Positions 1,941 to 2,451 of a stretch of DNA of 64,000 nt are shown piece by piece; the first letter of the stretch is position 1; the number at the start of each line of letters is the position of its first letter. Source of the DNA: Oculina patagonica (Eukaryota); assembly GCF_052425735.1 (NCBI RefSeq), contig NC_135764.1, forward strand, positions 9,796,001-9,860,000. Direction: 5' to 3'. A program made the position numbers and the translations under genes. The notes beneath the pieces are model-generated. The model saw only the letters and a list, made by a program, of their open reading frames with translations, made no database searches and was not told the origin of the DNA.

Positions 1941-2451
1941 ATGAACAAACTGTTCCTGTTAGCATTGGTTGGCTTTGTGCTGGCTTTAGGTTTGGCACTT
2001 CCTCTTTATGAGAATGGAGATCAAACGAATAATGACCTCAAATCAGAAGACGCTGCGAGGTGTGGTAAAAAACGTTTTCTATAAAAGACAACGATGTGGC
2101 GTGCTTTAACAGTTGCTTTACATTGTTCCAATCACACGAGCAAAATTGTTGCTGATTCGTTTTTTTTAGAATAAGTCAAACAACGCTTGTGCATTCGCAG
2201 GCAGTTTGTGTTAAATACTTATACATGTTATTGCCATTTTTTTTCGCAGGGACTTGAACTGGGATGCTGCAGATAAGGAAGATTACGATGATGATGATGA
2301 CTATGATAATGGCGAAGAAGACGAAGATGACGACAATTCTTTTTCAAATCCAATAGAGAAGTCATCAGATCGCCAAATTGTACGGCGCTTATTTCGAGTC
2401 CGTCGCTTCTTCCGCGGCACTCGTAGATTCTTCCGCCGCTTCCGTGGCTAA
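1941..2451 (+). CDS. Type A secreted cationic prepropeptide A1 (putative antimicrobial peptide precursor), 106 aa; exons 1941-2059, 2250-2451
   Basis: Signal peptide MNKLFLLALVGFVLALGLA. Phase-2 GT-AG intron (GAG|gtgtgg ... ttttcgcag|G) joins in frame to the acidic pro-region and C-terminal QIVRRLFRVRRFFRGTRRFFRRFR-G-stop. TATAAAA at 1886-1892. Confidence 0.88.

Follow-up and report, generated by a model that had tools for sequence, protein, structure and literature searches.

An acid-masked, arginine-rich peptide family in Oculina patagonica and other stony corals that resembles the arminins of Hydra in layout

Antimicrobial peptides (AMPs) of Hydra have a bipartite charge distribution, are taxon-restricted and are encoded by clusters of tandem paralogues (PMC10945409). 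The closest described counterparts of the genes reported here are the arminins, which have been reported as confined to the genus Hydra (PMC10945409); the active part of one of them, arminin 1a-C, is an amidated peptide of 31 amino acids with a charge of +13 that is helical in TFE (PMC6217004). The known AMPs of corals are all cysteine-rich and of the ShK type (PMC12496222; PMC12466427), among them damicornin, AmAMP1 and digitiferin, which have six cysteines and an ShK fold (PMC12496222; PMC12466427 Table 4). Here we describe a coral gene family whose type A product looks like an undescribed coral antimicrobial peptide, with both its ends and its activity predicted.

Oculina patagonica is a classical model of Vibrio-induced bleaching. 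The window that we analysed is a 64,000-nucleotide stretch of its 529-Mb genome (G000:C7:9796001-9860000), and positions below refer to the window unless they carry the prefix C7. Near its left end, 1919-3325 is a transcribed three-exon gene, A1 (Table 1). The 5′ ends of A1 cDNAs cluster at 1919/1920, about 30 nt 3′ of the TATAAAA box (X2 contigs), and the ATG lies at 1941; past the signal peptide, exon 1 encodes the beginning of an acidic pro-region. RNA contigs from three public runs in two studies reproduce the 2059/2250 splice joint exactly and show zero differences from the genome over 2248-2475. Since one X2 contig begins with the SMART template-switch oligo, the contigs represent cDNA. 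They diverge from the genome at 2475 and resume at 3209, and the gene therefore has an intron in its 3′ UTR, beginning 24 nt past the stop codon, and a third exon. The spliced model is identical to NCBI LOC144660752 (P0002, 106 aa), and P0001 likewise equals our gene model. Transcripts were found for A1 and for one long-form type A gene, and in a word-based protein search the annotated proteins that matched type A came from O. patagonica alone. A chance ORF or annotation artefact is ruled out by the spliced cDNA contigs together with the family-wide constraint described below. Runs from a second source ("organism B") were considered as evidence of cross-species conservation and set aside: they matched only the GAT-repeat (poly-Asp) stretch at 2287-2318, which is uninformative on conservation.

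Table 1. Positions of gene A1 and of related genes and gene pieces in the window.
Feature	Position	Strand	Basis
TATAAAA box, gene A1	1886..1892	+	sequence
Exon 1, type A1 (NCBI LOC144660752)	1919..2059	+	gene model = P0002; RNA contigs
A1 signal peptide, 19 aa, predicted cleavage after GLA	1941-1997	+	gene model
A1 intron 1, GT..AG, phase 2, 190 nt	2060..2249	+	RNA contigs
A1 exon 2	2250-2475	+	gene model; RNA contigs
A1 acidic pro-region, exon-2 part, ends NPIEKSSDR (SSDR = 2362-2373)	2250..2373	+	sequence
Predicted mature type A peptide, 24 aa	2374..2445	+	sequence
C-terminal Gly codon (predicted amide donor), 2446-2448; TAA stop, 2449-2451	2446..2451	+	sequence
A1 exon 2 end, 3′ UTR, GT donor at 2476	2452..2475	+	RNA contigs
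A1 intron 2, within 3′ UTR, acceptor ...ctccacag before 3209	2476..3208	+	RNA contigs
A1 exon 3, 3′ UTR, AATAAA at 3303, end approximate	3209..3325	+	RNA contigs
Type B1a paralogue; SSDP junction, longer poly-Arg tail ending in Gly	23864..24750	-	gene model
Type A remnant: last 96 nt of coding sequence (EKSSDR, 24 residues, Gly, stop)	26842..26937	+	sequence
A2 coding region; exon 1 39072-39190, exon 2 from 39401; mature 39576-39647	39072..39653	+	gene model
A3 coding region; exon 1 58273-58394, exon 2 from 58603; mature 58778-58849	58273..58855	+	gene model

The plus strand at 2365-2451 reads S-D-R, 24 residues, Gly and TAA. Translation bears out the composition given in a preliminary description of this stretch, 11 Arg and 6 Phe with hydrophobic residues at positions 2, 3, 6, 7, 9, 12, 13, 19, 20 and 23 (I, V, L, F, V, F, F, F, F and F, respectively), and the peptide contains neither Cys nor any acidic residue. 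The whole precursor is laid out like that of an arminin, in which a signal peptide and an anionic pro-region precede a strongly cationic C-terminal peptide free of Cys: the 106-aa prepropeptide of A1 consists of a 19-aa signal peptide, a 62-aa acidic pro-piece (net -20), the 24-aa tail (net +11) and the Gly, without Cys. The two are also alike in size and charge (31 aa and +13 for the arminin, 24 aa and +11 for coral type A), in ending with an amide (predicted for the coral peptide), and in combining taxon restriction with clusters of tandem paralogues (PMC10945409, PMC6217004). They differ in that the coral peptides are rich in Arg and Phe, whereas arminins mix Lys, Arg and Trp; in the conserved Asp-Pro junction of the coral family; and in distribution, arminins being found only in Hydra and the coral family in Scleractinia (Oculina, Pocillopora, Stylophora). 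BLASTP gave no alignment between the type A mature part and arminin 1a-C (31-aa active part, PMC6217004 Table 1), and because of this, and because arminins are confined to Hydra, we regard the two families as not homologous. On balance we lean slightly toward an arminin-like host-defence peptide family, analogous rather than homologous to the Hydra arminins, in which a transcribed gene encodes an acid-masked tail with predicted processing.

A1 is one member of a large array. Scanning 204 kb around the window, we found at least 18 intact paralogues, of types A-F, between C7:9768336 and 9933328 (about 170 kb), together with fragments and one copy with an in-frame stop. The 18 have in common a near-identical signal peptide, after which comes LPF or LPL, a conserved junction of the form ...NP-x-x-K-S-S-D-X, an acidic pro-piece with a net charge of -20 to -44 and a tail of 24 to 58 aa with a net charge of +11 to +30, and every precursor is net negative. 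Five type B genes lie in the window, namely B1a, which has the same signal peptide and acidic pro-region as type A, and those ending at 33432, 45393, 52765 and 62323. Type B served as query in a word-based search, and with the exhaustive profile search that came next it gave about 25 convincing relatives among 1.84 billion representatives: the named ones are proteins of Pocillopora meandrina and Stylophora pistillata, all annotated "uncharacterized", PFX17767.1 being a homologue from S. pistillata, and the remainder are from metagenome assemblies associated with corals, Tara samples among them. The family thus occurs in no fewer than three genera of stony corals, Oculina, Pocillopora and Stylophora, and the exhaustive profile search found no type A orthologue (DR-Q junction) in another species. 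A Pfam scan of five members gave sub-threshold compositional hits only and no domain at E <= 0.05, an ESM Atlas feature search gave no usable match, and a full-text search found no papers mentioning the accessions of the Oculina, Stylophora and Pocillopora proteins. The gene family appears to be undescribed, and the acid-masked cationic defence peptide is already known as a kind of system. With the ShK-type coral AMPs, type A shares small size, secretion, a scleractinian source and a proposed or proven antibacterial role, and damicornin-type precursors also have a pro-region; unlike them, the type A peptide lacks Cys and is, by prediction, linear, and it belongs to no Pfam domain (E <= 0.05).

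The proposal that the type A peptide would form an amphipathic helix is moderately supported by its computed helical moment. On the Fauchere-Pliska scale this moment amounts to 0.46 at 100 degrees (p = 0.04, 20,000 shuffles) and reaches its maximum of 0.65 at 105-110 degrees (p = 0.004, best of 90-110 degrees). The same calculation reproduces the published value of 0.205 for arminin 1a-C (PMC6217004 Table 1) and gives a comparable moment for magainin 2. In a single-sequence AlphaFold2 model (mean pLDDT 62), a helix is predicted over residues 80-102 with pLDDT 61-67. In its gross properties (24 aa, +11, 10/24 hydrophobic residues, no Cys) the peptide falls within the usual description of linear cationic AMPs, which are 12-50 aa long, positively charged, about 30-50% hydrophobic and free of disulfides. 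Significant helical periodicity is found in types A, C, D and E; the moment test detected no helical amphipathicity in type B tails, and one membrane-helix mechanism for all members may therefore be too simple.

For the processing of the tail, the nearest comparison is with cnidarian neuropeptide preprohormones of the Grimmelikhuijzen type. These too begin with a signal peptide and draw the amide from a C-terminal Gly; pGlu or X-Pro protects the N-terminus of their peptides, and the residues in front of it are acidic or Ser/Thr rather than basic (PMC7523074). Both kinds of end recur in the coral family: Q or Pro-containing starts follow the junction, and Gly or Gly plus a basic residue ends the precursor in 18/18 intact paralogues. 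Of 31 family-like homologues in other coral assemblies, 29 end in the same way, the other two having run-on tails that resemble gene-calling problems. Since this end is so conserved, Gly is the standard amide donor in cnidarians (PMC7523074) and the genome contains many Cu2_monooxygen (PHM-type) loci, the amide proposed in the preliminary description is a well-founded prediction with strong indirect support, and a C-terminal amide is well supported as a prediction for the family at large.

Monobasic cleavage, proposed in the same description as the step that exposes the N-terminus, does not hold as a family rule, because nearly all relatives carry Asp-Pro at the junction (SSDP, SADP, VEDP and similar); Arg occurs there only in type A (SSD-R-Q) and F1 (SSG-R-Q). 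Oculina, Pocillopora and Stylophora all keep Asp-Pro ahead of the cationic tail, also in members that have lost the Lys preceding it (QQSSDP, NEVEDP); an example can be seen in B1a at 23975-23989 on the minus strand. The pyroglutamate itself stays plausible independently of the monobasic route. In four lineages the residue immediately after the junction is Gln (DR-Q in type A, GR-Q in F1, DP-Q in P0047 and DP-Q in the ORF ending at C7:9780061). Trimming down to a Q or X-Pro is the route envisaged for cnidarian peptides, which typically lack preceding basic residues (PMC7523074); with such trimming, Gln would still become the first residue of type A. Judging from these sequence patterns, we give pGlu-Ile... 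about even odds of being the true type A N-terminus, and the main alternative would be an Arg-Gln... start, produced by cleavage after Asp. Calculated monoisotopic masses are 3309.96 Da for pGlu1-Arg24-NH2, 3326.98 Da for the form with Gln1, 3483.08 Da if the cut falls after Asp and Arg stays on, 3384.99 Da if Gly is kept without amidation, and 1847.04 Da for Phe12-Arg24-NH2, as expected from a cut at RVRR.

The type A tail also differs from neuropeptide precursors in what lies inside it, namely a full furin-type site (RVRR at residues 8-11) and four RR pairs (at residues 4, 10, 17 and 21). The 24-mer may therefore not pass through the secretory pathway intact, and its survival is uncertain. 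Taken further, this suggests a different gene product altogether: the tail might be a polyprotein-like substrate that furin or prohormone convertases cut at RVRR and RR into short peptides, such as an amidated Phe12-Arg24 or smaller, which would serve in signalling or at any rate leave the 24-mer without a role. Cnidarian preprohormones do use RR, KR and R sites together with Gly amidation (PMC7523074), and an internal G-RR in type B could yield a second amide. However, established cnidarian neuropeptides are about 6 residues long (PMC7523074; range about 4-19 aa) and often present in multiple copies, whereas each coral precursor carries a single poly-Arg tail of 24-58 residues after a long polyacidic block. 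No short motif flanked by Gly and basic residues recurs in the tails; the predicted fragments would be 2-7 residues long, mostly Phe and Arg, and without a shared terminus; and the paralogues, whose tails range from 24 to 58 aa, preserve overall charge and periodicity rather than a short core. We consider cleavage into short peptides quite unlikely as the main fate of the tail.

The preliminary description had reported the type A 24-mer as identical in A1, A2, A3 and a truncated remnant, with synonymous changes only. Both statements proved correct, and a fifth copy, A4, ending at G000:C7:9865287 about 5 kb past the window, encodes the same 24-mer. Within the window, the 24 residues plus Gly recur at 26860-26934 (remnant), 39576-39650 (A2) and 58778-58852 (A3). 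When the five copies are aligned over the 84 nt encoding SDR, the 24 residues and Gly, only two sites differ, each in a single copy and without changing the residue: the remnant has CAG for CAA, and A2 has CGA for CGG at Arg4 of the mature part. In the long-form type A RNA contig, which comes from another sample, this Arg codon reads CGT, a third synonymous state. The precursors are 106 aa (A1), 123 aa (A2) and 124 aa (A3 and A4) long, with 17 aa of the acidic region present in A2-A4 and absent from A1. This 17-aa indel, noted earlier along with pro-region substitutions, is real, but the substitutions fall mostly in exon 1, the exon-2 part of the pro-region being nearly as conserved as the mature part. 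The remnant keeps its 3′ flank and a copy of exon 3 at 28681; a gene-model search did not find its exon 1, so it is unlikely to make peptide. The motif that starts exon 3 recurs 3′ of the remnant, A2 and A3 (28681, 40375 and 59587, respectively).

Divergence between A1 and A2-A4 is 16% in the 5′ flank, 10-17% in exon 1, 7-10% in the intron and 14-16% in the 3′ flank, and falls to 2.6-4.3% in the exon-2 pro-region and 0-1.2% in the mature stretch (mature stretch versus non-coding, Fisher p 3e-5 to 3e-4). Against A3 and A4, the longest identical run in A1 is 112-119 nt at 2344-2462 (permutation p < 5e-5). Conservation of the mature stretch thus exceeds chance. What it means is less simple, for in type A exon 2 dS is only 0-0.05, in the pro and mature parts alike, against 0.07-1.5 in exon 1, and with 0 non-synonymous and 1 synonymous change in the mature part dN/dS is not estimable for type A. 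Because dS is low over the whole exon, gene conversion or recent spread of exon 2 is suggested. Exchange between paralogues is also indicated by the mosaic make-up of A2, whose exon 1 is closer to type D genes (91.6%) than to that of A3 (84%). Exon-1 identity is 83-90% within type A and 84-92% between types A and D when A1, A2 and A3 (1941-2059, 39072-39190 and 58273-58394) are compared with type D genes at C7:9892943, 9908508 and 9932594, and introns are type-specific; divergent first exons, type-specific introns and near-identical second exons together point to mosaic evolution within the array.

For type A alone, gene conversion or recent exon-2 spread would thus explain the invariance at least as well as selection, and because the synonymous sites, the adjoining pro-region and the truncated remnant, on which selection for the peptide is not expected to act (1 of 84 nt changed in the stretch, against 9-15% in its 3′ flank), are conserved too, type A invariance by itself is no evidence of function. 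One could go on to argue that it is functionally meaningless, with four or five copies sharing exon 2 through recent duplication or gene conversion and some perhaps decaying. The low dS, the remnant and the A2 exon 1 would all fit. Against this, 3/3 variants in the mature part are synonymous, one of them from another individual; A1 and the long-form type A are both transcribed; and in the sister types B-D, whose synonymous divergence is ample, the homologous part is strongly constrained. When minimal changes within types A, B, C and D were counted and summed, the mature parts showed 34 synonymous and 7 non-synonymous changes (ratio per site 0.08), the exon-2 pro-regions 27 and 34 (0.25) and the exon-1 pro-regions 18 and 27 (0.36), respectively, and the contrast between mature parts and exon-2 pro-regions is significant (Fisher p = 9e-5). 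The expectation that dN/dS would be lower in the mature part than in the pro-region is therefore borne out among paralogues of the pooled types. The cationic tail is the most constrained part within the family, and from the pooled contrast we conclude that it is a constrained product, the acidic part being freer to evolve. We think it quite unlikely that type A invariance carries no functional meaning. As for the earlier alternative of purifying selection or gene conversion, the first is upheld by the pooled types and the second suggested by the low exon-2 dS of type A, which alone is uninformative on selection; the invariance of the type A peptide would then reflect constraint combined with gene conversion or recent spread of exon 2.

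A constrained, secreted polycation need not kill microbes. Its main role might instead be to bind polyanions (mucus, nucleic acids, symbiont or nematocyst matrix) or to coacervate with the acidic pro-piece of its precursor; alternatively, the pro-piece might act in mineralisation with the tail as a mere chaperone. Such roles would suit a precursor that pairs a poly-Asp/Glu block with a poly-Arg block, and all three genera, Oculina, Pocillopora and Stylophora, are corals that calcify and live in symbiosis. The tails of type B are protamine-like rather than amphipathic, and more than the other tails they show the Arg runs with Ser/Gly spacers typical of protamines. Protamines, however, are nuclear sperm proteins without a signal peptide or acidic pro-piece, whereas the coral paralogues all carry a conserved N-terminal hydrophobic signal peptide. 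It speaks against a non-microbicidal role that the constrained part is the cationic tail and not the acidic block, which tolerates a 17-aa indel, and that the amphipathic periodicity of types A, C, D and E fits membrane action. The family motifs were not found in the searched supplement text of the O. patagonica and S. pistillata skeletal proteomes, which points weakly the same way, the files being small (PMC9532382). Overall we regard a mainly non-microbicidal role as unlikely.

With a secretory signal, an over-neutralising pro-piece, a constrained and probably amidated amphipathic tail, tandem amplification and taxon restriction all found together, a host-defence peptide is the best-supported reading. 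By analogy with described systems, the acidic pro-piece would neutralise the cationic tail during export; proteolysis at the conserved ...SSD-X junction would free the tail; its terminal Gly would be converted to an amide and, in type A, the exposed Gln would probably cyclise to pGlu; and the released amphipathic polycation would then act on microbial membranes. More tentatively, and with slightly more doubt than confidence, we suggest that this is the first linear, Cys-free, C-terminally amidated poly-Arg host-defence family in reef-building corals, occurring in Oculinidae and Pocilloporidae at least and massively amplified in O. patagonica, whose tails would be freed at Asp-Pro (Asp-Arg in type A) by processing not described for AMPs, with type A as a pGlu-capped derivative. 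Pocillopora and Stylophora, where relatives occur, are important both in reef building and as laboratory models. If the host-defence reading is true, a large, expressed and constrained linear Arg-rich family would give corals a second arm of humoral defence; peptides of this length can be synthesised, so that the defence claim is directly testable. The conserved Asp-Pro junction and universal Gly end offer a simple search rule for further members, and a tandem array with exon-level exchange between paralogues makes a compact case for studying how a defence-peptide family diversifies.

The array contains several further pieces and irregularities. Type A 5′ flank or promoter-like fragments without a gene body lie on the plus strand at 20727-20995 and 50281-50503; the first is 6 kb upstream of the remnant's exon-2 piece, with B1a (minus strand) in between, and these fragments suggest rearrangement inside a repeat unit of about 19 kb that has A on the plus and B on the minus strand. 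An orphan type C-like exon 2 with an SFDP junction and a tail ending in Gly is present at 13935-14318 on the minus strand, and a gene-model search found no upstream signal-peptide exon for it. The type D copy at G000:C7:9918457-9918654 (L006) has an in-frame TAG. Runs of N (gaps or masked sequence) inside the array at 10418-10562, 41649-41914 and 43869-44069 mean that copy counts for the window could be slightly low. Annotation of the array is uneven, since the NCBI model for D3 (P0030) quits the cationic tail after ...DPFIR and runs into unrelated sequence; P0010 is a type B model without the tail. Divergent outlying members are found at G000:C7:9768336-9769276 (+), 9775082-9774307 (-), 9779342-9780061 (+) and 9939157-9939390 (+). 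Among these, F1 combines its GR-Q junction with a Pro-rich middle, the 58-residue Lys/Arg tail of E1 gives a helical moment that is very strong over its full length (0.61), and the other two are ORFs with an acidic-then-basic layout, one of them containing Cys.
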